From Setoptus koraiensis (lineage: Eukaryota; Animalia; Arthropoda): a DNA stretch of 64,000 nt. The stretch covers positions 9,052,001 to 9,116,000 of the forward strand of contig CM106586.1 of NCBI GenBank assembly GCA_048013815.1. Reading direction: 5' to 3'. Shown one piece after another: positions 5,012-56,500 of this stretch. The first letter of the stretch is position 1. The number at the start of each line of letters is the position of its first letter. The notes beneath the pieces are model-generated. The model searched no databases. It was not told where the DNA came from and saw nothing but the letters and a program-made list of their open reading frames with translations. The translations under genes and the position numbers were made by a program.

Positions 5012-5350
5012 ATGAGCTATCAAGTTTACAGGAACACAACTCTCGGACAAACATTACAAGAGACACTGGACGACTTTATCCAATCTAGTCAAATAAGTCC
5101 ACATTTAGCCTACAGGGTTTTAACACAATTCGACAAATCTATAAACCAAGCGCTCAAAAATAAAGTCAAAACAATGCTCACATTTAGAGCAGCCCATCTC
5201 AGGACATATAGATTTTGTGACAATGTTTGGACCCTAGTGCTAGAGGATGTTGAATTTAGAAATGTCCAAGAATTGGTGAAGGTAGATAAAGTAAAAGTAG
5301 TAGCTTGTGAAGGCAAAGCTAACAGACCACACTCACTTGATTTGGATTGA
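5012..5350 (+). CDS. GTF2A2: Transcription initiation factor IIA gamma (small) subunit, intronless, 112 aa
   Basis: [24 protein letters not shown]...[10 protein letters not shown]...YRFCDNVWT...VKVVACEG matches the conserved TFIIA-gamma sequence end to end. Confidence 0.97.
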
Positions 5351-5716
5351 AGACACTATGAGCATTCATGTCAGTCTATGTTTATAAACACACTTATCGA
5401 GGTATAAAGCTTTTCTGTAAATGATCATAACGTGTATATTTACTACAAATTAAATCAGTCAATTTATAACAACGAGCTCGATACTTTCTCACTCAAGTTT
5501 TTATCGAAGTACCACTGCACGCTTTTCTCAGCTGATGTGCCATATGCATGGTGCGTGGTGCTAGCACTGACCACCTCTGTATCGCATTGGTCCATTACAG
5601 CACGCGAAACTATTTCAAATGTACATTTTTATAATTAATCATTATCAATCGATATAAGATCTTTACATAATGACATCATTGAATCTGCCACTAACATCCA
5701 CAGATTACCACTTCAC

Positions 5717-35835: not shown

Positions 35836-38800
35836 TTATAACACAAATATATTTAAAGGTTTTATAAATATCAATTCGAACCTTTGTTGCGCATATTGTA
35901 TACTTTTTGATTTTATACTTTCGGTGGCGGCAGGGGTGCTGTTGTTACCAATGGCTTTGTTGTTTTCTATAGCTGTAAACATTGTTTGGTCAGTTGCTTG
36001 GCATCTTCTCTTGTTGCTACTGTTGTTGTTGTTGGTTCGTTTTGGTTTCTTTGCTCGCCAATATCTGATCCATGTTGCGCCAGCCACAATGGGAATAGCC
36101 GAAACTGACGAAAATGCCAATGTCCAGCCAGCCACAACTGACCAAAGCGGAAATTTGTAGCCACGATACACTGGCGTCTCGGCCGAGAATATAGACATCG
36201 CAATGACCACCTAGAGAAATGATTACAAATTATGCAAATTAGCGCGTTTACGAGCACAGGTAAAAGTAATTAGCCACTACCGAATGTGCGCAAATGAAGG
36301 ATAGACAAATTGAGTTGTTCCGTTATACTCACGCCCAAAAACAATGGTGATATGTATTTCCAGCATATTATGTAGAATAGATGAGGTTTCTTCCCCAACA
36401 TTGACTCAATATTTGGTATAAAATTTGACAATCCTATGTTTTTGTGACGCCCAGCGTACGTATTCGAAAGTTGTTAATTATTCTGTTATTAATAGTTGAT
36501 TAATTGAGTTTTGTGTCAATCAATTAAATTAAAAGTCAGAAACTTACCGTAACAGTAAACCACACCTATAGCCTCGAATAATGCAGAGAATAGTAAGGAA
36601 ACTCCTGCCGAGTAAACGTCGAACCAATACATGGTGTAAGCTCCGCCCTGAATAAGTGACGATAAAATTTGATTAGTTATCATTGATTCGCCAGTCCCTG
36701 CACCGTTATTTATCTGAATACAAAAAGCCAGTAGTTGATAGCAAATGCAACCCCCTCAACAGCCATATATCAACTATTCAAGTGTATGCGATCAATCAGT
36801 GACTAATGATAATTAAAATTAATTATGGGCAAGCCTTACCTGAGTGCAACTAATTAACGCTGGCAAAAAAGATGATGCAATCACTATAAAAGTTAATTGG
36901 CCTCTTGTTAATCTTCGCGCAATCTTAAATTCGTCCTCCAATCCAGTGATAACTGCCTCTAAACCGCCCATCTAGTTGTTGTGAGCAAATTGTTGAATAG
37001 TAGACGATACAGAACGTGTCAGATCATGACATAACGTGGCAAGTAACGTTATGCGAGAACAATTATTAGCGAGTTGTGAAAAAAAAAACGAAGAAGAAAA
37101 AAGCAAGTGATAAAAAGTAAAAAGCAGTGATTTGTCTTTTTTTCTAGGCAAGCTTACCGCTGAATCGATGCCCAAAGTGAGCAACATAATGAAGAATAGT
37201 ATAGACCAAAATTGAGCGAATGGTAGCGTGGTGAGGGCCTCTGGATAGACCTCAAACACTAGACTGTAGCCCTCTTTTGCCACCTTGTCAATCTCTATGC
37301 CCAGATTGGTGGCCATGTAACCCAAGTAGACAAAAACGACTAGACCCGAATATATGGATGTGGCAGCATTGACGGCAGACGTCACCAAACAATCCCTATA
37401 AAACAGTTGATGTAAACAGTAGTGGTAAAAACGAATATGGTGAATTAACTGTTGTTGCAAAATATGCCAGTGTATAAGATCGCTAACTCACCTGTAACAA
37501 TTATTATTGTGGCCATTGAATGAGGCGTAGGTGAGATGGACGCCGAAGCCCACACCGATGGAATAGAATACCTGTCCGGCGGCGTCCACCCAAACTTGTG
37601 GATCGGCCAATTTCTCTAATCTTGGCGACAAATAGTATGCAATACCCATACCCGCTCCTGGCAGAAATAGGCCTCGCACAAGCAAGACAGTGAGTATCAT
37701 GTAGGGCGCGGTGGCGGTCACCCAGACGACCTGACGACCGAGTCGGAATAACAGATATAATAACAATGATAACAAAATAATATATAGATCATCGGATATC
37801 GTGTACATATACATGAGATTATAAATAATTTCATATATTATAATTGTTACGCAAGTCACAGACACCACTCACCTTGCCTGATGTTTCCAGACCTCTAAAT
37901 AGCGAGAAAAAATGCAACGTATACACCACCAAGGTGCACACCACCAATCCTGGCCTCAGGTAGCCCATGTCCTCGAGACCGGTCGATTTATCCAGCTCAA
38001 GCAGTTCTTTCACAAAGAACTCTGATGCCGGGGATGTGATCTCCCTCTGGGAGAACAGTTCCGCCTTACAAGCCTCTAGACTCATGTTTTTCGGACTGCA
38101 CAAGTCTCTCAATTGTCTAATAGACATACAAGTTGCATTGTTCCATTCGTGATTGCACTCTTCCCACGGCATTTTAGCAGCTGTCAGAAGTGGGGCCAAA
38201 TTAATTTAACCAAAAGTTGACAAGGTTAAAAAGGGACTATCTTACTCTAGTATAGTATCTTTAGACTAGTGGCATGTGGCCGAAAACAATCACGGCAGCT
38301 ATTATATTATCATTATTATTATGTATATTATTATTATGGGGCTACATAATAATAATTATATTGAGCGCGGATTGATATTATTATATAATTATAATATCAA
38401 TTGAGCCGACATTGGCTGATTCAACGATGGGCTAATATTCGAATAATAATCATGGGTAATACTCACTCGATGAAATGCTCCTGTATATAAAATAGACACT
38501 CCAGGCTATGAGGACATTGTAGTAAAAGGACACGTACCACGAAATGAGTATGCTGCAATAACCGACGCCCTTCATCGAGGGACAAATTTTGTTCCAAACG
38601 GTTATGGGCCCCTTCTTGACAAATTGACCTAGTAATAACTCTAAAAAGAATAACGGAATTCCGCCAAAGATTAACATTATAATATAGGGTATTAAAAAAA
38701 CGCCGCCCCCGTTTTTGTAACATAAATAGGGAAAGCGCCATATGTTGGCTAAATCAACAGCAAAGCCAATAATTGATAATAGAAAATCCATTTTTTTGCC

Positions 38801-39931
38801 CCAACGCAATCTAATTTCTGAGCTTGATTTGGACATGGCGCAACTGTTGAGCGCCGAAGAATTCAGAGACGACGAACCATCGGGCGATCTAATGTTGCCT
38901 GTAGTGGTAGTTGTAGTGGTTGTGGTGGTGGTAGTGGTGGCGGTATTAGTGGTTGTGTTTTGGTTGTTTTGGTTGCTACTTTGGTTGCTACTTTGGTTAT
39001 TTTGGTTGCCACTTTGATTGCAGCTAGAGTTTAGAGTATTCTGGATATTTTGGGTGTTTGATGCGGCGCTAGTTGAGGTGTTGAATTTTGGATTAGACAC
39101 CACCACTTGCTTGAACGAGTGCCCATCGGGACATGCCACCACCTTTAGGCTGGTGGCATTTGGCTGATTATAACTGTTGTTTGTTAATCGATTATCCTTG
39201 TTTGTGCTATTAAACAGCAATGAGCATTCGCTGTTATTATCTAGCGTCACATTATTATGCAATTGTTTGCTATTAATCAAGCTAGTTGTGGCGCGTGCCG
39301 GTGCAGAAGAAGAGGCCATTGCATTCCTATTGTCGGACAGATAATTGTCGCTGCTGTTAGTGGCTGTTGCATTGGTCATTGCATAACGTTGTTGTTGCAG
39401 TTGTTGTTGTTGCTGCTGTTGTTGCTGTTGTTGCTGTTGTTGCTGTTGTTGCTGTTGTTGTTGTTGATGTTGTTGTTGTGGAACGTTGCTATCGTGGAGG
39501 ATGTTTGCGTGTACATTCGTGACCAACTCGTTTCGTTTTTGTGTGCTCTGTTTGTATTGGTCACGAGCGTCAGAATCGATCGAGAACTGGGCCTCTTGAT
39601 TGAGGCCAGCGGCCTCTTCGTGGTGATGGAAATGTTTTTGCTTCTTTGAATTGACCATCGACGACAATTTGTGCCTAACTCTCTCTGTGTATGTCAGTGC
39701 ACGTTGCTTGTTTGCTGAATCTAGTGCTTGCGTGGGCGGCTGTTGCTGGTGCAGAGCCGACGACGACGCCAACGATTGCTCCAGATCCAGCTCCAGCTCC
39801 TCCTGAATTTTGGACAAATCGTGGTCCCTTTCCAGCGCGGGTCCTGTCAATTGAGCCCTTGAGGGCCGCTCGAGCGTCTGATGATTGCCTGCTAAACTGG
39901 ACTGCTGCTGCTGTTTGCCGCTGCTATTCAT
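35836..39931 (-). CDS. SLC6 sodium/chloride-dependent monoamine transporter (octopamine/dopamine/noradrenaline-transporter-like); exons 38467-39931, 37873-38180, 37492-37730, 37158-37395, 36840-36971, 36548-36647, 36333-36433, 35836-36210 (985 aa)
   Basis: [34 protein letters not shown] contains the TM1 Asp of monoamine transporters. Also MPWEEC..W, K|[29 protein letters not shown]|[10 protein letters not shown] and WKYISP. All eight exons splice in phase. Confidence 0.93.
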
Positions 39932-40963: not shown

Positions 40964-43900
40964 CCATGTTTGTATTATGTGTGTTGGTGTTGCTGCTCGT
41001 TTGCTGGCCAACGACCACTGTTTGTTTGTTGTCGCTGTTGTTGTCGCTGTTGTTGTCGCTGTTGTTGTTGCTGTTGTTGTTGCTGTTGCTCATTCCCATG
41101 GGAACCCCATTGGCAGCAACATCACTGGCACCACCAACAACAAATGATTGAGCAGAAGCAGATTATTGCGGGCAGCAGCGATTAACAGCCAGCCAGACAT
41201 TGAGCGAGCCAGCTCGATAGTTTGTGAGCCAATGCAGCCTGTTAGCCCGACAGTGGGCTCGATAGACGGCTCGACAGTGGGCTCGCTAGACGGCTCGATA
41301 GTCGGCGAGCCAGACAGCCAGCCAGCTAGCTAACCAGCGAGACAGGTACAAGAGAAAAGATTATTATTATTATTATTTTGACGCTTATCGATCGCTGATT
41401 ATCAATGGTTTATTTTGTCGCCAATGTTAATCCATTGAACCATTGCTAGCCAGTGTGTGCTGTTGCTTGTTGCCAATGTGCGATTTGTGATTCCCATTTG
41501 TGATAGCTTCGATCTCCAATTGCGACTTCTATTTAATCTATGTGAACACAATGCCAGCGTAAGCCAGCCTCTCTATAGATGTAAATTAAAACCTAAACAA
41601 GTAAAAGAAGATTCCACAAGCTGACTTGTCTCGCCTGATGCTGTTGCTGCTGCTTGTCGCGTCGACGATTGTCGCTTGCTGCTTCGATTTCGAATTGGCT
41701 TCTTGCTTCGTAAATGGTGGATTTGATTTAATCTTTGCACCGCCGTTGCGCCGCACCAAAGCCAGTGGCAACAGTTTTGTTTGCGGGCGCTATCTGTGCA
41801 GCTAATAACAAATCAATTAAACACAACAACATTCGCAGCTATCTTGTGACAACTATTTAGGCGATTACTGTTACCCTGCCAAGAGATGACGTAATATCGC
41901 TGTTGCTGTTGCCGGCTGTCGCTGGCTTCGGCTGGCTTCGGCTGGCTGCTGGCTGCCGGCTAGGGTGGCAACGGCTTAAATTTATATTTTGCTTATAAAT
42001 AACTTTTGCGCTGCTCGCACACTGGCGATCGCTTCTCGAAATAAACAAACTGGGCGCTCGTTAGCTAGGTGTGTGTGTCACTCAGGTAAACTCTTCATCT
42101 CTTGCTTGTCATGTCGTCGTGATTTAATCGGATTATGTAAGCTGTTGTGCCGGTCGTCGTTGAGGCAGTGGCAGTTGTTGCAGCGGTTGCAGCGGTTGCA
42201 GTTGTTGCAGCGGTTGCAGTTGTTGCAGCGGTTGCAGTTGTTGCAGTTGTTGGGCTCTCTCGCTCTCGGGCAGACAAGGCCCGGCTAAACGATCTCTCTG
42301 CTCGCTCGATTGATATTTTGTCGAGTGTGTGTGTGTATTTCTCAGAGAACCAGATTGCAAATCAAACAGCCAGTTGCGCGTCGCCTCACCCAGTCAATAC
42401 AGCAGCGTGACACAATGCGACACCACTGGCGACAACAACGCCACCGCCAACAACCACAACCACCACAACTGCAACCGCTGCAGCAAGTGTGTAAATACAT
42501 GGTGCCACATTGTGTGTGTGCGTGTGTGTGTGTGTGACCTTACACACAATATGACATTTCTGACACACTCAGAGCGGCGCGTCGGCTCGGGGCCCCCAAA
42601 ACGCCCCAAAGAATTTCGCTCAATAGCAGTGAGCTCGAGTCATTACTGCGGAACCAACCGTTGCGCACTTGTTATGTTGACGTGTGGGGACACTTTTTGT
42701 CCTCTGCTCCACACAGTCAACGGGCCCCACAGTCAGCGGGCCCCACAGTCGGCGGGCCCCAAAGTCAAACGCTAGCTGACAGCAGAGAGCACAGCGAGCG
42801 CATCTCGAGCTGCCATCGTCTCGGGCCACTCGATTGCAAGCAAAATTGCTTTTCCGGCACAATGCCGGCTAACAAGTGATTGTGGGGCCCCGTCAATTAG
42901 CGAGTGCATCAATTGGCGCAACGGCCAACTACTACTTGTTGTAATCGGCAACAACATTTCCGTTTGCTTGCCAGTTTGCGATCAAAATCGGCCCCAAAGC
43001 TGCCGCTGACGAGCCACGACCCTGGCCCAAATCTCGACGCGATCCGCAGCACAACAATGTTGGCACAACAACATTGTTTTGGCGTGCACACTGTTTAATT
43101 AAATATCTATTATGTAATTGCGGGGCAATAATTGCGCCGAGAAGCCCAACCAAACGAAGAAGAGAGGCCCAGAAGAGAAGCCAAGGAGATGTTGCCATGA
43201 TATGATATGGTAGCAATAAGCGTCACTATCGTCGCTCACAATCAACAGACAAGTCAAATGACAGCAGTGCCAGTTATTGCCACCATTGGGGGCGCCTTTG
43301 TGCCCACAATTTGATTAAAGCGGCTCGCAGGTAGATTGGGGGGGGGGCCCGGCTTAGTGTGCACAGCGATGGTGGATTGTGTTCATTAATCATTTATATC
43401 ATCATCATAATCATATTGTCCATTGATTAATCATCATTTAATCTTGTTCTCCCTCGCTACGGTCGCCGGTCGCCGCTTGTTGGGCCCCAAAACAAGTCGG
43501 CCCGACGAATATTGGAGCGGCGGTTTTTAGGTCACACACTAAGCGGCGGACAATTTGTCGCCCGAATGGAATGAGCGCGACAAACTGACCAGCGTCATTT
43601 GGCCCGTTTGTCCATTTGGCCGGCCCGGCGCGATCAAGTGTCGGGCGCGCAGACATTGACCGTCTGGCAACCCGCGCGGCCCCCAATGTCCGGCCGGCGC
43701 GCCACAAAACCTCACAAATTGTGAGTCACAATGCGGCAATATATTTGCGGCTGGTGCGGCTCACAACACAGAATATATATTGAAATGTTGTTTAATATCG
43801 GCGCCATACGAGCAATCTCTTTCTTTGGGGCGCCTCTCGATTTCGCTGATCCTATTTCTTGTCTAGTGGCGTTGTAATCATGGCGACCGGGTAATTGTTG

Positions 43901-44894
43901 GCCATTGTCGGGCCGTGCGCCTCACACTGACGGTGCTAAGGGGCGCATAAATGGCATATATTTGCACTATATAGCGATCTGTATGGCTATGAGCGGCCAG
44001 ACACATTGTTGGAATGTGCTCGGCCGACAAGTTTGGGGCCCAAAGTGTGAGTGAGAGTGGGGCCAAGATGAAAAGGCATTGTGTGTTGGCGGGCCCGATG
44101 AACAACAATGAGCCTGGCGCCGGTGGAGTTATTTGTCGGGCGCGACAGTCACTTTGTTAGCCAAAGCACATAGTCAATTTACAAGATAGTGGCGGCCTCA
44201 CTTACGTAACGAGCAACTACTACTTGTCTTGCCGGCACAATGCACGGCGCTCATATTTGTTTATATTGGACCCGCTGGCCCCAAATAACGGTGCTAACGA
44301 CACGCTTATTGGATGGCGATGCGCCCCAATATTTATATATCATTTATGTATGCCTCATATGTGCTGTTATATATGGTTTTTACACGCTGGCTCACACATA
44401 TATGGTTTGTTATGTAAGAGTAGGCAATATATCAACTATATCATATATATCATGCACTCCATTAATTTCTGCCTGATTCCGGCTGGCCTCTGTGTCCCGT
44501 CTTGTCTTGTCTCGTCTCGGCTTTTCTTGTCTGCCCGACTGGCGCGCCAAAACCGGACCGGACCGGTCCGGTCCGCCACTCACTTCGGGCAGTTGCTGTT
44601 GTTGTCTGGCACCACCGTCACTAGCCACAACAACTACAACAATGGCCCGAGTGCCGCTGTTGCGTCGCGGTGCGTCTAACCGGGCCCCACCAACTAACCG
44701 GATTGGCGCTGGTGCATGGCGCATATCATGGCGCCCCGTTAGCCAGCGAGCCGGTCGACTGATTAAAGGTTGACGCTCGCTTGGGGCCATTATCGCCAGT
44801 GGCAAGCATCAAGTGACAATCTAAGTGATAATTTCGTGACACTTGCTCTCGCCTCACCATGCCACTGCCACACTGAATAATGGTCGCTTGGTGG

Positions 44895-45008
44895 CGCCGA
44901 TATCCAGCGATAACCAACGCCGATATCCAGCGATAACCAACGCCGATATCCAGCGATAACCAACGCCGATATCCAGCGATAACCAACGCCGATATCCAGC
45001 GATAACCA
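44895..45008. repeat. 23-bp tandem repeat, 5 copies (cgccgatatccagcgataaccaa)
   Basis: Head-to-tail units with no spacers. The mirror at 53462-53530 has only 3 copies. Confidence 0.95.
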
Positions 45009-45668
45009 GCGATTCAGTGATGAAATTAAATTGCAGCATGATAATAACTAATGTGTAATAACTAATAATAACAACTGTTACAGACTATTAAGGGGCGCGC
45101 AAATGAGCTCCGGCTGGCCGGCCATCTCAAAACCAGGGGCCAGTTTAAACTGGCGATGCTCCGCTTGGCGGCCAACTCTGGCTTGCGCGCGAGCACTGTC
45201 ACCAACTAACGGAATGTCCCAGGTTGCCAGATGGCGCTGGCAACCTGGGTCTGGCGCTGACAAACTGTCAAAGGGACCCGTCACCATGGAGACGAAATCT
45301 CGTGTTCCGGCGATTTGAGCGACGAAAGGGCAAGAATCGGGCGATAATCGGGCGAGAATAGATCGATTCTCGCGAACCAGTTGGCACCCGTTGCCCGGCA
45401 CCGAGAGACAATCGACGAAACTGACTTGGGTCGTCCGCTGGGCCGCTCGGCGGGCCGGCTTTTTGGTTGCGAGCGGCAAAGTTCAGCTTCGGGCGAAAAG
45501 CGGTACCCTTGCAACCGGCGCGAGAGTGCACTCAAACATATGGACTGGTGTGGCCGGACTTGGAGCTGGTCGCTTTAAAATTCAATGTTTAAATGCGGAA
45601 TTCAGTTGAAAAGTGTCGCTCGATCGTCGCGGGGCTAAAAATAGGCTGAAACCGCCGCCGCTATTTGA

Positions 45669-45729
45669 CCGCTGAAGCCCGCTAGATGTCGGCGCCGGCA
45701 AGAAGCCCACATCTAGCGGGTTTCAGCGG
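45669..45729. repeat. 61-bp GC-rich hairpin (21-bp stem with one mismatch, 19-nt loop)
   Basis: ccgctgaagcccgctagatgt-cggcgccggcaagaagccc-acatctagcgggtttcagcgg. Confidence 0.93.
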
Positions 45730-46879
45730 CGCGCCTAGCGACTTGGCGAGCTTTTTTTCTGTTCCTCGGCGGCTATATGCCGTCTATATGTCCGCCATGT
45801 AGGTGGCCTATCGATGGACAGGCGGCTAAATGGCGATTTAATGAACGTTTCTCGCATACGCATGATTACGCGGATTTTGTGTGTCGTCGCTGTCGACTTT
45901 GGGGCGCCGCGATCCAATGTCGAGGCACTGATTCAAATTCACGCCGTGCCCAACAAAGATCCGCCGGCCTTTCGATTGAGCCCGAGCAAGAGGCCTAAAA
46001 AGCATGCGGGTGGCGCGTGCAAGCCCGTGCAAGCGATTCATCGAGCAATTCAGGCAGCCAGCGGGCAAAAAAGAAACCAACGACAGATAGAGAGCAAAAA
46101 TTTGAAAAGAATTGGCGACCTATGCTATGCAAAGTGACTCTTGTTGCCCAGACAGACGACCCAACGTCTGTTCGGGGCCCCATCTCTTGCTGCGTGTGTG
46201 TGTGTGTGACCTAGGTAGATGCGGCCGGCTTGGGAGTTCACGATGCGACGCCATAGGGGCCCCATCCCGGGGCATCTATTCACAGAGGGCGCACCGTGAA
46301 TAGAAACATTATTATGCGCCAGCTTTTTTCGCCCGAATCTCTTTTTGCAAACTTTTTTTGGCCTGCCTAGCCGGTGTGGCAACAGATAACTAAGGGCACA
46401 CTAATAACAACCCCGACAGCCTAGGTTAATAACCAGCAAAAAGCCGGACAAAAGCGGCCAACAGTTGTGTCAATATAACTTGACTAATTTGATGAGTTCA
46501 CCGCCATAATGACAAACCATGATGGCAATGAATTTCCGTTTGCCCGGCCAACCAAATTGTGTGATTTGGTATGAATGAGACGCCGTAATACGCCACCAAT
46601 GAGCCAATCAGAGAGTGTGCGGACAATTGAATTGATGTGTGGCCACAATCTGATGAAGCCGGCTCGTGCTCGTCAAACTGTCATGACGTATCATGATGTA
46701 TTTTGATGATGTCATGGCAATAGTATCAATAGTCGATGAACATCTCAATACACATGACAGCCCAAATGAAAAGGGGCCCACAATTGACCGGGAAAAGCGG
46801 CCGAGATTTGCCATTGACATGACGCCAAATGACATGACGCCAAAACGAAATGTCATTTGAGCGAACTGGGGTCATGTAG

Positions 46880-46926
46880 ACGTGCCTCGTAATTGGGCAA
46901 AGTAGGGCCTCTGAAAAGTATAAAAG
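46880..46926 (+). promoter_or_regulatory. Candidate core promoter of the neuropeptide-precursor-like gene (ACGTGCCTCGT, AGGGCCTC, TATAAAAG)
   Basis: TATAAAAG at 46919-46926, ~260 bp upstream of the ATG. Tandem tgacatgacgccaaa (TGACG half-sites) at ~46815-46845. Confidence 0.55.
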
Positions 46927-47182
46927 CAATCAATTTCAGCCAAATTTGCCATCATAGCGCGTTTTTGTCAGTCATCGGTAACATCGTCACTTGGTGTCAT
47001 TCGATCGCTGTCGCTAGTCTCACAATTGCCGGCACATTGAGCATCAGTTAGCAGTAAATAACAAAATAATTTCCACTAAACAACAAATTTTTTTGCACAA
47101 AAGCCATTCTCAGACAACAAGTTCACAGCCATCAGCAGAATCGTTTATTTAGCAGAGAATTTAGTCCGACAAAACAACCACA

Positions 47183-47578
47183 ATGAATAGCTATCTACTG
47201 AAAATTTTTGCTTTTCTAATTGTGCTCAGCCAAACAATTATGGTTAGCCGATGCGCTTCGCGCGAGCCCAAGGTAAGATGATCGAGCCAACGACGGCCAC
47301 CAATACAACCAAATTGCTCGATCAAATCACTAATCATTACATAATATACATTACATGTACATACGTACTATTTGACTGGCTCGTGGCACCAGTTTGATGC
47401 GGCCAAGATAACGGGATCTCTGTCAGACGATGACATTGTCAAAGGCACTCTTCAACAAGTTCCCCGTTATCTCATGTATTATCGCCGTGACACTTCCGCT
47501 CCCTACTACAAGCGAGCTGTCACCGGCATCGACACAATAACGGGCTATTCAATCGGCAAGCGAAGCGAGCTGGGGTAA
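47183..47578 (+). CDS. Putative neuropeptide precursor; exons 47183-47272 and 47393-47578 (91 aa), with a possible third exon 47760-47946 if the GTAAGT at 47575 is used
   Basis: MNSYLLKIFAFLIVLSQTIMVSRCASREPK (signal-peptide-like) |gtaaga...cag| FDAAKITGSLSDDDIVKGTLQQVPRYLMYY-RR-DTSAPYY-KR-AVTGIDTITGYSI-GKR-SELG. Dibasic cleavage sites and a Gly-Lys-Arg amidation signal are present. Confidence 0.75.
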
Positions 47579-48877
47579 GTCGAGTTTGTTGAGCTCAATG
47601 GGTGACATTAAAATTGTAAAATCCCATTGCGTCCTAAAACATTATAAACATTATAATATTCTCACTATTGATTGAGGCTCCAACTCGTGTCAACCAACTC
47701 GCATATTTGTACTTACAATTGTATCATTCGTTCTCTGCTCGATCACCGTCGACAAGCAGCTCCAGTCTGTTTAATCAGCGACAATCAACATTCGAAAGCA
47801 ATCCAATTTCATCTGAGATGGTGTCGGATTTCAACCACCAACAGGGCAAATTTTTTCCCCTAAGATCCCTACAAAACTCTAGGCTAACCAACGAAAATTA
47901 CTATCAATCGGATCCCCTGGCACCTCTCACTTTGGTTGTCCTGTAAGCCCGTTGGCCGACATGTAATCGGTTATAGGTACAAGCCATACACACAATCCAT
48001 ATAGCCAATCCATCGATCATTGGCAAGCTTAGCACTTGTTACAATGCTAAATGAACATAATGCTAATGTAATGTAAGAAAAAACAACGGAGAGAAGCAAC
48101 GGATTGGAGGAGAGAAGTATCACACATTTCAGATGCAAAGACAACAATCATACTAAACAAATTCATACACTAATGGTCACCAAATCTCAATTACAATCTT
48201 AATCAAACCAATAGATCGAGCTCACAATAAGACCATGTCACAACAAAAGTGTTTGCGCCACAATCAGATAAATAAAAACACATCTCATCCAACGACAACC
48301 CTTATATCTAGCGTATACCGGTTGTAGAGCAGCAAACACGTGACTCGTGCTCGCTAGAGGGCCTCAAAACCCAGTATAAAATGCAAATCGGCATAAACTA
48401 TTTAAGATAGATAAGACAGATTCGTATCATGTACAAAATGTGTGAGCGACACAACAGTTGCATGCACGACCATGATATTATTATCAAAGCTACACAATCA
48501 TTCATTTTAAATTATCGAGGAGCAACTGAGAGATTTTTCGTTCTGCACTATCACTAAATAGCAAGTATTAACCAAAATTATCCACTATTACCCGACATCC
48601 GGAAACCTACAGGCGACGAGCAAGGGTAATGAGCGAAAAGTCGCCAAATGGTCGCAATTTCGATCATCGTTCATTGTCCGCAACACTCCCCATCGAGACA
48701 ATCAACTTTGGATATTCATTTTTCATGCAATCATCGGATATAATCAATCAAATATGATCAATTCTAGATGGGCTTGTGCAAATGAATTTTCGGAGATAGA
48801 AAATAGTAAATAATAATAATAATAAAATTGCGACGAAATGTATTTGTTTTTGTATTTGGTATCTTGAGCGCCATCTG

Positions 48878-49390
48878 TCGTCTATGTTTTGTATATCCAA
48901 AAGGGTTGTAAAGATGACATTTTTGTTCGGAATGTTGCTTTGGCGAATCGAAGTTTTTTTATGAGTGGCACAGAAGAGCGATGCCGACATGCAATGGTTG
49001 GAAGAGTTGGAGCCAGAGGGGCCCTGGGGAGTGCGGGAGCAGTTGGCGCCTGCATCAGCGCTAAATTTGGATACATTAGCGAGTTCGGGTGTCCCTCCTA
49101 CTCGGTTTTCGTTTTTTTGTCCCCGTGTTGTATTTTTTTGTCGCCCGTTGACCCCTCGTTTGTTTTTTTTATTTTTGTTTTTGTTATTTTTTTTTAGTTT
49201 TTTTTTTTTGTTGTTTTTTTTTTGCAACGCCGTTGTTTTTTTTTATTTTTTGTTTTTTGTTAGTGTTTTGTGTTTTTTGTTTGTTCGTTTGTGTTGTTTT
49301 GTTTTTGTTGTGGTTGTTTGTGTTGCGTTGTTTTTTGTCCGTTTTTCCCCCCAGTTTTAATTTTCCCGTTTGTTGTTTTTTTTTGTTGTT
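48878..49390. other. Apex of the inverted repeat: progressively degraded arm copy (48878-~49100) followed by T/G-rich low-complexity sequence
   Basis: 48878-49030 still aligns loosely to the reverse complement of 49450-49581 (e.g. gccgacatgcaatggttg vs tccgacaagcactggttg), then decays into irregular T runs. Confidence 0.85.
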
Positions 49391-50889
49391 GTTGAGTAAG
49401 AGATATGTAATACTATATGTGAGAAGGATGAGGAGCTTCATGGAAAGAAGCCAATGGGGCCCCTATGGAGACAAATATGACAACCAGTGCTTGTCGGATT
49501 CGCTCTCGGTGCCATCTATAGTCGATTCGCAAAAACAAAATTCGAACAAAATTCACACACCCAGATACAAATCATAGACGTCAGATGGCGCTCAAGATAC
49601 CAAATACAAAAACAAATACATTTCGTCGCAATTTTATTATTATTATTATTTACTATTTTCTATCTCCGAAAATTCATTTGCACAAGCCCATCTAGAATTG
49701 ATCATATTTGATTGATTATATCCGATGATTGCATGAAAAATGAATATCCAAAGTTGATTGTCTCGATGGGGAGGGTTGCGGACAACGAACGATGATCGAA
49801 ATTGCGACCATTTGTCGACTTTTCGCTCATTACCCTTGCTTGTCGCCTGTAGGTTTCCGGATGTCGGGTACTAGTGGATAATTTTGGTTAATACTTGCTA
49901 TTTAGTGATAGTGCAGAACGAAAAATCTCTCAGTTGCTCCTCGATAATTTAAAATGAATGATTGTGTAGCTTTGATAATAATATCATGGTCATGCATTTC
50001 GTGCATACAACTGTTGTGTCGCTCACACATTTTGTACATGATACGAATCTGTCTTATCTATCTTAAATAGTTTATGCCGATTTGCATTTTATACTGGGTT
50101 TTGAGGCCCTCTAGCGAGCACGAGTCACGTGTTTGCTGCTCTACAACCGGTATACGCTAGATATAAGGGTTGTCGTTGGATGAGATGTGTTTTTATTTAT
50201 CTGATTGTGGCGCAAACACTTTTGTTGTGACATGGTCTTATTGTGAGCTCGATCTATTGGTTTGATTAAGATTGTAATTGAGATTTGGTGACCATTAGTG
50301 TATGAATTTGTTTAGTATGATTGTTGTCTTTGCATCTGAAATGTGTGATACTTCTCTCCTCCAATCCGTTGCTTCTCTCCGTTGTTTTTTCTTACATTAC
50401 ATTAGCATTATGTTCATTTAGCATTGTAACAAGTGCTAAGCTTGCCAATGATCGATGGATTGGCTATATGGATTGTGTGTATGGCTTGTACCTATAACCG
50501 ATTACATGTCGGCCAACGGGCTTACAGGACAACCAAAGTGAGAGGTGCCAGGGGATCCGATTGATAGTAATTTTCGTTGGTTAGCCTAGAGTTTTGTAGG
50601 GATCTTAGGGGAAAAAATTTGCCCTGTTGGTGGTTGAAATCCGACACCATCTCAGATGAAATTGGATTGCTTTCGAATGTTGATTGTCGCTGATTAAACA
50701 GACTGGAGCTGCTTGTCGACGGTGATCGAGCAGAGAACGAATGATACAATTGTAAGTACAAATATGCGAGTTGGTTGACACGAGTTGGAGCCTCAATCAA
50801 TAGTGAGAATATTATAATGTTTATAATGTTTTAGGACGCAATGGGATTTTACAATTTTAATGTCACCCATTGAGCTCAACAAACTCGAC

Positions 50890-51285
50890 TTACCCCAGCT
50901 CGCTTCGCTTGCCGATTGAATAGCCCGTTATTGTGTCGATGCCGGTGACAGCTCGCTTGTAGTAGGGAGCGGAAGTGTCACGGCGATAATACATGAGATA
51001 ACGGGGAACTTGTTGAAGAGTGCCTTTGACAATGTCATCGTCTGACAGAGATCCCGTTATCTTGGCCGCATCAAACTAATGCCACGAGCCAGTCAAATAG
51101 TACGTATGTACATGTAATGTATATTATGTAATGATTAGTGATTTGATCGAGCAATTTGGTTGTATTGGTGGCCGTCGTTGGCTCGATCATCTTACCTTGG
51201 GCTCGCGCGAAGCGCATCGGCTAACCATAATTGTTTGGCTGAGCACAATTAGAAAAGCAAAAATTTTCAGTAGATAGCTATTCAT
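50890..51285 (-). CDS. Second copy of the putative neuropeptide precursor; exons 51196-51285, 50890-51075
   Basis: Mirror of 47183-47578. The acceptor context differs (ggcattag vs ggcaccag), but the AG is kept. Confidence 0.72.
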
Positions 51286-52741
51286 TGTGGTTGTTTTATC
51301 GGACTAAATTCTCTGCTAAATAAACGATTCTGCTGATGGCTGTGAACTTGTTGTCTGAGAATGGCTGTTGTGCAAAAAAATTTGTTGTTTAGTGGAAATT
51401 ATTTTGTTATTTACTGCTAACTGATGCTCAATGTGCCGGCAATTGTGAGACTAGCGACAGCGATCGAATGACACCAAGTGACGATGTTACCGATGACTGA
51501 CAAAAACGCGCTATGATGGCAAATTTGGCTGAAATTGATTGCTTTTATACTTTTCAGAGGCCCTACTTTGCCCAATTACGAGGCACGTCTACATGACCCC
51601 AGTTCGCTCAAATGACATTTCGTTTTGGCGTCATGTCATTTGGCGTCATGTCAATGGCAAATCTCGGCCGCTTTTCCCGGTCAATTGTGGGCCCCTTTTC
51701 ATTTGGGCTGTCATGTGTATTGAGATGTTCATCGACTATTGATACTATTGCCATGACATCATCAAAATACATCATGATACGTCATGACAGTTTGACGAGC
51801 ACGAGCCGGCTTCATCAGATTGTGGCCACACATCAATTCAATTGTCCGCACACTCTCTGATTGGCTCATTGGTGGCGTATTACGGCGTCTCATTCATACC
51901 AAATCACACAATTTGGTTGGCCGGGCAAACGGAAATTCATTGCCATCATGGTTTGTCATTATGGCGGTGAACTCATCAAATTAGTCAAGTTATATTGACA
52001 CAACTGTTGGCCGCTTTTGTCCGGCTTTTTGCTGGTTATTAACCTAGGCTGTCGGGGTTGTTATTAGTGTGCCCTTAGTTATCTGTTGCCACACCGGCTA
52101 GGCAGGCCAAAAAAAGTTTGCAAAAAGAGATTCGGGCGAAAAAAGCTGGCGCATAATAATGTTTCTATTCACGGTGCGCCCTCTGTGAATAGATGCCCCG
52201 GGATGGGGCCCCTATGGCGTCGCATCGTGAACTCCCAAGCCGGCCGCATCTACCTAGGTCACACACACACACACGCAGCAAGAGATGGGGCCCCGAACAG
52301 ACGTTGGGTCGTCTGTCTGGGCAACAAGAGTCACTTTGCATAGCATAGGTCGCCAATTCTTTTCAAATTTTTGCTCTCTATCTGTCGTTGGTTTCTTTTT
52401 TGCCCGCTGGCTGCCTGAATTGCTCGATGAATCGCTTGCACGGGCTTGCACGCGCCACCCGCATGCTTTTTAGGCCTCTTGCTCGGGCTCAATCGGGAGG
52501 CCGGCGGATCTTTGTTGGGGGGCACGGCGTGAATTTGAATCAGTGCCTCGACATTGAATTGCGGCGCCCCAAAGTCGACAGCGACGACACACAAAATCCG
52601 CGTAATCATGCGTATGCGAGAAACGTTCATTAAATCGCCATTTAGCCGCCTGTCCATCGATAGGCCACCTACATGGCGGACATATAGACGGCATATAGCC
52701 GCCGAGGAACAGAAAAAAAGCTCGCCAAGTCGCTAGGCGCG

Positions 52742-52802
52742 CCGCTGAAGCCCGCTAGATGTCGGCGCCGGCAAGAAGCCCACATCTAGCGGGTTTCAGC
52801 GG
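52742..52802. repeat. Mirror copy of the 61-bp hairpin, in the same + orientation as 45669-45729
   Basis: The + strand string is identical to 45669-45729, although its flanks are reverse-complemented. Confidence 0.93.
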
Positions 52803-53461
52803 TCAAATAGCGGCGGCGGTTTTAGCCTATTTTTAGCCCCGCGACGATCGAGCGACACTTTTCAACTGAATTCCGCATTTAAACATTGAATTTTAAAGCG
52901 ACCAGCTCCAAGTCCGGCCACACCAGTCCATATGTTTGAGTGCACTCTCGCGCCGGTTGCAAGGGTACCGCTTTTCGCCCGAAGCTGAACTTTGCCGCTC
53001 GCAACCAAAAAGCCGGCCCGCCGAGCGGCCCAGCGGACGACCCAAGTCAGTTTCGTCGATTGTCTCTCGGTGCCGGGCAACGGGTGCCAACTGGTTCGCG
53101 AGAATCGATCTATTCTCGCCCGATTATCGCCCGATTCTTGCCCTTTCGTCGCTCAAATCGCCGGAACACGAGATTTCGTCTCCATGGTGACGGGTCCCTT
53201 TGACAGTTTGTCAGCGCCAGACCCAGGTTGCCAGCGCCATCTGGCAACCTGGGACATTCCGTTAGTTGGTGACAGTGCTCGCGCGCAAGCCAGAGTTGGC
53301 CGCCAAGCGGAGCATCGCCAGTTTAAACTGGCCCCTGGTTTTGAGATGGCCGGCCAGCCGGAGCTCATTTGCGCGCCCCTTAATAGTCTGTAACAGTTGT
53401 TATTATTAGTTATTACACATTAGTTATTATCATGCTGCAATTTAATTTCATCACTGAATCG

Positions 53462-53530
53462 CTGGTTATCGCTGGATATCGGCGTTGGTTATCGCTGGAT
53501 ATCGGCGTTGGTTATCGCTGGATATCGGCG
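53462..53530. repeat. 23-bp tandem repeat, 3 copies (mirror of 44895-45008)
   Basis: Three units of (c/t)tggttatcgctggatatcggcg. Confidence 0.95.
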
Positions 53531-56500
53531 CCACCAAGCGACCATTATTCAGTGTGGCAGTGGCATGGTGAGGCGAGAGCAAGTGTCACGAAATTATCAC
53601 TTAGATTGTCACTTGATGCTTGCCACTGGCGATAATGGCCCCAAGCGAGCGTCAACCTTTAATCAGTCGACCGGCTCGCTGGCTAACGGGGCGCCATGAT
53701 ATGCGCCATGCACCAGCGCCAATCCGGTTAGTTGGTGGGGCCCGGTTAGACGCACCGCGACGCAACAGCGGCACTCGGGCCATTGTTGTAGTTGTTGTGG
53801 CTAGTGACGGTGGTGCCAGACAACAACAGCAACTGCCCGAAGTGAGTGGCGGACCGGACCGGTCCGGTCCGGTTTTGGCGCGCCAGTCGGGCAGACAAGA
53901 AAAGCCGAGACGAGACAAGACAAGACGGGACACAGAGGCCAGCCGGAATCAGGCAGAAATTAATGGAGTGCATGATATATATGATATAGTTGATATATTG
54001 CCTACTCTTACATAACAAACCATATATGTGTGAGCCAGCGTGTAAAAACCATATATAACAGCACATATGAGGCATACATAAATGATATATAAATATTGGG
54101 GCGCATCGCCATCCAATAAGCGTGTCGTTAGCACCGTTATTTGGGGCCAGCGGGTCCAATATAAACAAATATGAGCGCCGTGCATTGTGCCGGCAAGACA
54201 AGTAGTAGTTGCTCGTTACGTAAGTGAGGCCGCCACTATCTTGTAAATTGACTATGTGCTTTGGCTAACAAAGTGACTGTCGCGCCCGACAAATAACTCC
54301 ACCGGCGCCAGGCTCATTGTTGTTCATCGGGCCCGCCAACACACAATGCCTTTTCATCTTGGCCCTTCTCACTCACACTTTGGGCCCCAAACTTGTCGGC
54401 CGAGCACATTCCAACAATGTGTCTGGCCGCTCATAGCCATACAGATCGCTATATAGTGCAAATATATGCCATTTATGCGCCCCTTAGCACCGTCAGTGTG
54501 AGGCGCACGGCCCGACAATGGCCAACAATTACCCGGTCGCCATGATTACAACGCCACTAGACAAGAAATAGGATCAGCGAAATCGAGAGGCGCCCCAAAG
54601 AAAGAGATTGCTCGTATGGCGCCGATATTAAACAACATTTCAATATATATTCTGTGTTGTGAGCCGCACCAGCCGCAAATATATTGCCGCATTGTGACTC
54701 ACAATTTGTGAGGTTTTGTGGCGCGCCGGCCGGACATTGGGGGCCGCGCGGGTTGCCAGACGGTCAATGTCTGCGCGCCCGACACTTGATCGCGCCGGGC
54801 CGGCCAAATGGACAAACGGGCCAAATGACGCTGGTCAGTTTGTCGCGCTCATTCCATTCGGGCGACAAATTGTCCGCCGCTTAGTGTGTGACCTAAAAAC
54901 CGCCGCTCCAATATTCGTCGGGCCGACTTGTTTTGGGGCCCAACAAGCGGCGACCGGCGACCGTAGCGAGGGAGAACAAGATTAAATGATGATTAATCAA
55001 TGGACAATATGATTATGATGATGATATAAATGATTAATGAACACAATCCACCATCGCTGTGCACACTAAGCCGGGCCCCCCCCCCAATCTACCTGCGAGC
55101 CGCTTTAATCAAATTGTGGGCACAAAGGCGCCCCCAATGGTGGCAATAACTGGCACTGCTGTCATTTGACTTGTCTGTTGATTGTGAGCGACGATAGTGA
55201 CGCTTATTGCTACCATATCATATCATGGCAACATCTCCTTGGCTTCTCTTCTGGGCCTCTCTTCTTCGTTTGGTTGGGCTTCTCGGCGCAATTATTGCCC
55301 CGCAATTACATAATAGATATTTAATTAAACAGTGTGCACGCCAAAACAATGTTGTTGTGCCAACATTGTTGTGCTGCGGATCGCGTCGAGATTTGGGCCA
55401 GGGTCGTGGCTCGTCAGCGGCAGCTTTGGGGCCGATTTTGATCGCAAACTGGCAAGCAAACGGAAATGTTGTTGCCGATTACAACAAGTAGTAGTTGGCC
55501 GTTGCGCCAATTGATGCACTCGCTAATTGACGGGGCCCCACAATCACTTGTTAGCCGGCATTGTGCCGGAAAAGCAATTTTGCTTGCAATCGAGTGGCCC
55601 GAGACGATGGCAGCTCGAGATGCGCTCGCTGTGCTCTCTGCTGTCAGCTAGCGTTTGACTTTGGGGCCCGCCGACTGTGGGGCCCGCTGACTGTGGGGCC
55701 CGTTGACTGTGTGGAGCAGAGGACAAAAAGTGTCCCCACACGTCAACATAACAAGTGCGCAACGGTTGGTTCCGCAGTAATGACTCGAGCTCACTGCTAT
55801 TGAGCGAAATTCTTTGGGGCGTTTTGGGGGCCCCGAGCCGACGCGCCGCTCTGAGTGTGTCAGAAATGTCATATTGTGTGTAAGGTCACACACACACACA
55901 CGCACACACACAATGTGGCACCATGTATTTACACACTTGCTGCAGCGGTTGCAGTTGTGGTGGTTGTGGTTGTTGGCGGTGGCGTTGTTGTCGCCAGTGG
56001 TGTCGCATTGTGTCACGCTGCTGTATTGACTGGGTGAGGCGACGCGCAACTGGCTGTTTGATTTGCAATCTGGTTCTCTGAGAAATACACACACACACTC
56101 GACAAAATATCAATCGAGCGAGCAGAGAGATCGTTTAGCCGGGCCTTGTCTGCCCGAGAGCGAGAGAGCCCAACAACTGCAACAACTGCAACCGCTGCAA
56201 CAACTGCAACCGCTGCAACAACTGCAACCACTGCCACTGCCTCAACGACGACCGGCACAACAGCTTACATAATCCGATTAAATCACGACGACATGACAAG
56301 CAAGAGATGAAGAGTTTACCTGAGTGACACACACACCTAGCTAACGAGCGCCCAGTTTGTTTATTTCGAGAAGCGATCGCCAGTGTGCGAGCAGCGCAAA
56401 AGTTATTTATAAGCAAAATATAAATTTAAGCCGTTGCCACCCTAGCCGGCAGCCAGCAGCCAGCCGAAGCCAGCCGAAGCCAGCGACAGCCGGCAACAGC

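Follow-up and report, generated by a model that had tools for sequence, protein, structure and literature searches.

The window analysed here, a stretch of 64 000 nucleotides from Setoptus koraiensis, raises the question of whether a short spliced reading frame at 47183–47946 is a gene for a neuropeptide precursor. Prohormones of this kind have a characteristic architecture, with a signal peptide, a spacer, KR, the peptide, G-KR and a C-terminal spacer. At the locus this architecture is present: the first exon resembles a signal peptide, the introns are canonical, and a single peptide with Gly at its C-terminus lies between dibasic sites. Our main reading, to which we give a probability of about 0.45, is that the locus may be a real, lineage-restricted gene encoding a small secreted prepropeptide from which an amidated neuropeptide or peptide hormone, AVTGIDTITGYSI-amide, would be released.

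Structure of the candidate gene

The window was read and translated around the candidate. The ATG of exon 1 is at 47183 and the closest in-frame stop upstream is at 47162, 21 nt before it. The encoded N-terminus has a Lys in the n-region, a hydrophobic core of 13–14 residues (best 11-residue Kyte–Doolittle mean 2.9) and then the small residues Ser/Cys/Ala/Ser. Judged by this heuristic (n-region Lys, Kyte–Doolittle core, small residues), exon 1 encodes a predicted N-terminal signal peptide. An earlier note, made from the letters of the window, had claimed a signal-peptide exon followed by a phase-0 intron; both are there, with the correction that exon 1 ends at 47272 and not at 47273 (Table 1).

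Exon 2 begins with a spacer of 30 residues, and its translation confirmed the order proposed for the remainder, RR-DTSAPYY-KR-AVTGIDTITGYSI-G-KR. The RR is encoded at 47483–47488, the first KR at 47510–47515, AVTGIDTITGYSI at 47516–47554, the Gly at 47555–47557, the second KR at 47558–47563 and the TAA stop at 47576–47578. The bracketed unit from KR to G-KR spans 47510–47563, with RR 27 nt upstream of it; three dibasic sites fall inside 27 residues, the last immediately preceded by Gly. For the amidated 13-mer, [M+H]+ was calculated as 1309.700, and for DTSAPYY as 816.341. Neither Cys nor other features of folded secreted proteins were found in exons 2 and 3.

The suggestion that a GTAAGT at 47575 could add a third exon held up, as a splice from this donor to CAG|C at 47760 stays in frame and joins 47760–47946 in phase. 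The predicted product would have 91 amino acids with two exons or 152 with exon 3, and the same predicted peptide is contained in both. Two polyA-type signals follow, ATTAAA at 47607 and AATAAA at 48271, which could mark the end of an unspliced two-exon mRNA and of the three-exon version, respectively. The open reading frame list had been said to miss the spliced gene, and it does break the model up into three distinct frames of 32, 68 and 92 amino acids.

Table 1. Features of the candidate locus and of the palindrome in which it lies (window positions)
Feature	Position	Strand	Remarks
Palindrome left arm	23867–48894		right arm 49565–74552, past the window end; arms ~25 kb, 99.7% identity
Candidate 5' UTR, ATG-free	46877–47182	+	Inr-like TCAGTC, TCATTC, TCAGTT
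TATAAAA box, candidate core promoter	46919–46925	+	~260 nt 5' of the start codon
Candidate gene exon 1, coding part	47183–47272	+	Met; 30 signal-peptide-like codons in all; A at -3
Intron 1	47273–47392	+	120 nt, phase 0, GTAAGA...CAG; donor AAG|GTAAGA, GT at 47273
Exon 2	47393–47578 (to 47574 if intron 2 is spliced)	+	spacer, RR, DTSAPYY, KR, AVTGIDTITGYSI, G, KR, SELG, TAA
Predicted mature peptide AVTGIDTITGYSI and amide-donor Gly	47516–47557	+	from translation; putative processing
Optional intron 2	47575–47759	+	185 nt, phase 2, GTAAGT...CAG; donor overlaps the exon 2 TAA
Optional exon 3	47760–47946	+	62 codons, 0 dibasic sites, stop TAA at 47944–47946
Mirror copy of the whole gene model	50522–51285	-	other palindrome arm; exons identical

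Leader and promoter

The claim of a TATA box was borne out by the TATAAAA at 46919–46925, the only strong TATA box and the sole TATAAA in the 1.3 kb from 46000 to 47300. With 16 occurrences of TATAAAA per strand in the window, the chance of finding one in any 250-nt span is ~6%. The ATG at 47183 is the first after an ATG-free stretch of 309 nt, and just 7 of the 1246 gaps between ATGs on this strand reach 300 nt or more. The probability of a leader free of ATG was 0.007 in mononucleotide shuffles and rose to 0.04 with a first-order Markov model.

Coding potential and chance expectation

The frequency of such a constellation was estimated with a rule-based scan that required, together, an N-terminus resembling a signal peptide, a donor of the form GTRAG, an acceptor YAG at 60–400 nt and a dibasic site with a G-dibasic 5–30 residues on. 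Both the scan criteria and the supporting features were selected after the locus had been seen. In the real window, only the candidate locus and its mirror copy matched. Reversed sequence gave 0 matches, both for the window and for 124 kb taken from other parts of the genome. Block-shuffled windows gave 31 matches in 504 (~0.06 per window) and 124 kb of other real DNA of the genome gave one. Extrapolated from the shuffles to the genome (48.8 Mb in two scaffolds, taken as ~49 Mb), the bare pattern is expected by chance ~45 times. Because of this number, and since the rules were set post hoc, the pattern alone proves nothing. The match in other real DNA lies at about 79272–79491 (-) in window numbering (L011 ~5272–5491) and is GC-rich and Cys/Gly/Arg-rich; this model looks like a chance product and an example of the false positives of the scan.

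Codon usage was scored with a table trained on 5563 codons from domain-bearing open reading frames of the window. The proposed frame ranked first of six in each of the three exons. Exon 3 scored 0.152, close to the mean of 0.162 for true coding chunks; among stop-free non-coding segments, 7% score at least 0.152. The scores of exon 2 (0.054) and exon 1 (-0.055) were not distinctive and fell inside the non-coding null. The GC content of exon 2 was 51%, against 40% and 38% in the two flanking introns. The lengths of the candidate introns (120 and 185 nt) fall in the range of ~115–230 nt of the homology-mapped introns of the neighbouring SLC6 gene, which have GTGAGT, GTAAGC or GTAAGG donors, are AT-rich and have weak pyrimidine tracts, and the candidate introns look alike. 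By our estimate the odds that a real gene of some kind stands at this locus are roughly two in three. It is probably a small secreted-peptide gene, with a neuropeptide role predicted from its sequence.

Searches for relatives

Homology searches were run exon by exon. Pfam gave no match in any exon, and a word-index protein search returned no protein with words in common with exon 2 or with exon 3. A HMMER search with exon 2 against 1.84 billion representatives yielded no true homologue, the 2 matches being bacterial (E = 3e-6 and 2e-4). Both are long bacterial surface proteins in which tandem 'FDESK.TGP...KGT' units sum partial matches, and they were dismissed as spurious. Among JGI metagenomes, contigs of the closest related mite included, there was no confirmed exact 8-mer match; the degenerate pattern G-[ILV]-D-[ST]-[ILV]-[ST]-G-[YF]-x-[ILV]-G-basic-R had three matches there, all of them interrupted by stops and rejected. 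The ESM Atlas offered only sub-threshold bacterial clusters, and its 'recognition' value, above the level of most real proteins, proves nothing. Rfam returned nothing relevant over the region, and no paper containing the peptide string was found in the literature.

Four loci of related mites (L003–L006: JGI 3300030504, SRR31346743, SRR29524966 and SRR33927357) were compared over 10 kb on each side of the orthologous transporter gene. No similar sequence and no comparable small secreted open reading frame was found in these flanks, where the gene order differs. The neuropeptide-precursor reading of the earlier note stands as far as the prohormone architecture goes; conservation of the KR-flanked peptide was not found in the collections or at the four related mite loci, a 13-mer being near the detection limit of large libraries. 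In the candidate's own genome there was no paralogue beyond the two palindrome copies, so the candidate is not a repeat. It is plausibly an orphan, whose predicted peptide would be assignable to no family recognisable by sequence search.

Genomic neighbourhood

An SLC6 monoamine-type transporter gene lies at 36200–39931 (-), with a mirror copy from 58537 (+), and encodes a low-complexity N-terminus of ~370 residues that includes a run of ~26 Gln. Homology mapping to intronless relatives revealed at least four gaps of ~115–230 nt between its exons; the SLC6 orthologues in the four related mites consist of one or two long open reading frames each. The closest transporter orthologues, with 84–94% identity in the conserved domain, came from Logan and JGI assemblies in which the genes are arrayed very compactly and have few introns, and the next-best named matches included oribatid, astigmatid and other mites, ticks, spiders and horseshoe crab. 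These observations agree with a gall-mite-like genome. In three of the four related loci the genes follow in the very compact order WDR3-like, SLC6, COX6A and XPD-type helicase, with other genes upstream of SLC6 in L004. In the candidate's genome a WDR3-like open reading frame and SF3B1 are found downstream of SLC6, indicating that the region is rearranged relative to the related mites.

The interval between transporter and candidate, 42000–46900 (mirror 52000–56500), has ~52% GC against a background of ~40% and contains CAG/CAA-type repeats. Neither a Pfam match nor a convincing coding frame was found in 42000–46900; this interval might be regulatory DNA or a CpG-rich region of large size.

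Palindrome and copy number

The candidate lies in the left arm of a large palindrome, the arms of which are separated by a spacer of 670 nt rich in T runs (48895–49564). Inside the gene region the arms differ only at 47101 and 47170 in the leader and at 47389–47390 in intron 1, four positions in all. The last of these differences is a CC>TT change in the other arm just ahead of the AG of intron 1, where the YAG acceptor is kept. Over 2.5 kb the arms show 7 differences, with 0 in the 460 coding bases; as ~1.3 would be expected there, the absence of coding differences is uninformative. A perfect hairpin-forming element of 61 nt occurs at 45669–45729 and 52742–52802, as a direct and not an inverted repeat between the arms, so that its orientation runs against that of the palindrome.

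A scaffold gap of 500 N (L011:553–1052, where 74552 corresponds to L011:552) begins exactly where the right arm stops, and beyond the gap come ~900 nt of degenerate (CCCCA)n. Long-read fold-back artefacts usually look like this, with a contig folding back right up to its own end. The palindrome may be such an assembly fold-back, and the second gene copy an artefact; against this, the arms differ by substitutions, indels and the flipped 61-bp hairpin. Because the second copy is possibly an assembly artefact, the presence of two copies is not to be relied on. The gene model in the left arm is unaffected by this question.

Predicted processing of the precursor

Under our main reading, transcription would start downstream of the TATAAAA at 46919, and the signal peptide would direct the product into the secretory pathway and be removed near residue 24–26. 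A PC2/furin-type convertase would cleave after RR, KR and KR, the basic residues would be trimmed by a carboxypeptidase, and PHM/PAL would convert the exposed Gly to give AVTGIDTITGYSI-amide, with DTSAPYY and the N- and C-terminal spacer peptides as by-products. The amidated peptide would then act through a receptor as a neuropeptide or peptide hormone. We infer every one of these steps from the sequence. Domain searches of the genome identified 5 loci with the convertase P-domain (PF01483) and 4 with the Cu2 monooxygenase domain (PF01082), a domain that also covers dopamine/tyramine beta-hydroxylases; PHM is likely to be among the latter, though it was not singled out. The presence of these loci makes the processing machinery plausible.

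With single-copy amidated arthropod neuropeptide precursors, the candidate shares a signal-like exon 1, one dibasic-bracketed peptide with Gly and a small precursor of 91–152 amino acids, as well as processing-enzyme domains encoded in the same genome. It differs from them in that the candidate peptide fits no described family and no conservation was found.

Resemblance to orcokinin and orcomyotropin

The earlier note had pointed to a loose likeness to orcokinin and orcomyotropin, of which a by-eye motif fit remained, the canonical core being absent, the peptide not multi-copy and sequence homology not detected. A single gene encodes both orcokinins and orcomyotropins, and orcomyotropins are connected with orcokinin B through peptides such as SLDGIGGGNLVG (PMC4237046). 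Both the orcomyotropin FDAFTTGFGHS and the orcokinin NFDEIDRSGFGFN are documented (PMC4696782), and in crustaceans and insects the orcokinin gene yields SLDGIGGGNLVG-type peptides and orcomyotropin (PMC4237046, PMC4696782; family background in PMC5656890).

The hydrophobic-D-small-I/L-x-G core is fitted by eye by I-D-T-I-T-G and by F-D-A...T-G of the candidate, with too few residues for statistics. Judged by eye, the candidate would share with orcokinin B/orcomyotropin the hydrophobic-Asp-small-Ile-x-Gly core and a C-terminal part that is hydrophobic; F-D-A opening the first spacer peptide and a predicted signal peptide on its own exon are further points of likeness. Unlike these peptides, the candidate lacks the orcokinin-A core NFDEIDR, has one copy instead of many and a predicted amide end, and shows no statistical similarity at the level of the precursor. 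The coding motifs NFDEID and FDEIDR were not found in the genome. A looser FDEID-type pattern gave 59 scattered matches; one close pair among them, on contig 2, was checked and rejected as an SMC-type ATPase. By eye, the I-D-T-I-x-G core would be closest to peptides of the orcokinin-B/orcomyotropin type, a motif fit on which we do not file the candidate as a member of that family.

Alternative explanations

The features at the locus might be a chance constellation in non-coding DNA, in the ~7-kb GC-rich region upstream of the SLC6 transporter, with no product made. The bare pattern is common enough for this, in shuffled windows, over the genome and in other real DNA alike; once the features are combined, however, the genome-wide chance expectation falls well below one. 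An ATG-free leader with TATAAAA immediately before the ATG at 47183 argues for a gene, although the leader reaches only p = 0.04 under the dinucleotide model. The codon scores of exons 1 and 2 lie within the non-coding range, whereas each of the three exons scores highest in its proposed frame and the score of exon 3 resembles that of coding sequence. A GTAAGT overlapping a stop may be a trivial coincidence, but behind this consensus donor a third open reading frame follows in the correct phase, and the candidate introns are similar to the real ones of SLC6. That neither homologue nor paralogue was found in searches of protein libraries, metagenomes and the own genome again fits chance, which on this balance we consider somewhat unlikely. 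A real gene could also encode a small secreted protein of an ordinary kind, such as one from the salivary or other glands of a plant-feeding mite, in which the dibasic pairs are incidental and unprocessed. Plant-feeding mites commonly have small secreted proteins that are orphans, evolve fast and are specific to a lineage, and total non-conservation characterises such genes more than it does neuropeptides. Three closely spaced dibasic sites with a Gly before the last form a specific signature of an amidated peptide, however, and the lack of Cys and other folded-protein features in exons 2 and 3 also speaks against this explanation; the single putative peptide copy and an exon 3 of 62 codons without cleavage sites agree with it. 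We regard an ordinary secreted protein as unlikely.

The candidate might also be the mite's strongly derived orcokinin gene, of the pedal-peptide/orcokinin family, with FDAAKITG... as an orcomyotropin-like product and GIDTITGYSIG as an orcokinin-B-like one. F-D-A stands directly at the start of exon 2, but this segment is preceded by a single Lys and not by a dibasic site. The KR-flanked peptide contains hydrophobic-D-T-I-x-G and has a Gly at its end too, a likeness seen by eye over 4–6 residues and picked after the fact. The usual orcokinin gene was not found in the genome by its NFDEID/FDEIDR coding motif, although a missing exact DNA motif is not equivalent to a missing normal orcokinin gene. 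Tandem peptide copies are absent, with one dibasic-flanked copy and a weak internal echo (ITGS.. versus ITGY..), and no homology to any library precursor was detectable by Pfam, word index or HMMER. An origin from orcokinin in this sense appears to us the most doubtful of the explanations considered.

Significance for mite neuropeptides

No published neuropeptidome of gall-mite-like Acariformes was found in the literature searched. AVTGIDTITGYSI-amide may be a genuine signalling peptide, either of a new arthropod neuropeptide family or from an orcokinin-type gene derived beyond recognition, restricted to a gall-mite lineage, arranged head-to-head with a monoamine-transporter gene and perhaps a recent palindrome duplicate; this fuller proposal is tentative and, taken as a whole, rather unlikely. 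In a genome of 49 Mb, chance alone produces dozens of sequences that look convincingly like a prohormone, and therefore such calls need RNA or peptide evidence. If real, the candidate would bring one more amidated peptide, assignable to no family, to the gall-mite-like Acariformes, whose neuropeptide set is very reduced. It would also provide receptor deorphanisation with a concrete ligand and, in a group of crop pests, a target specific to the lineage.
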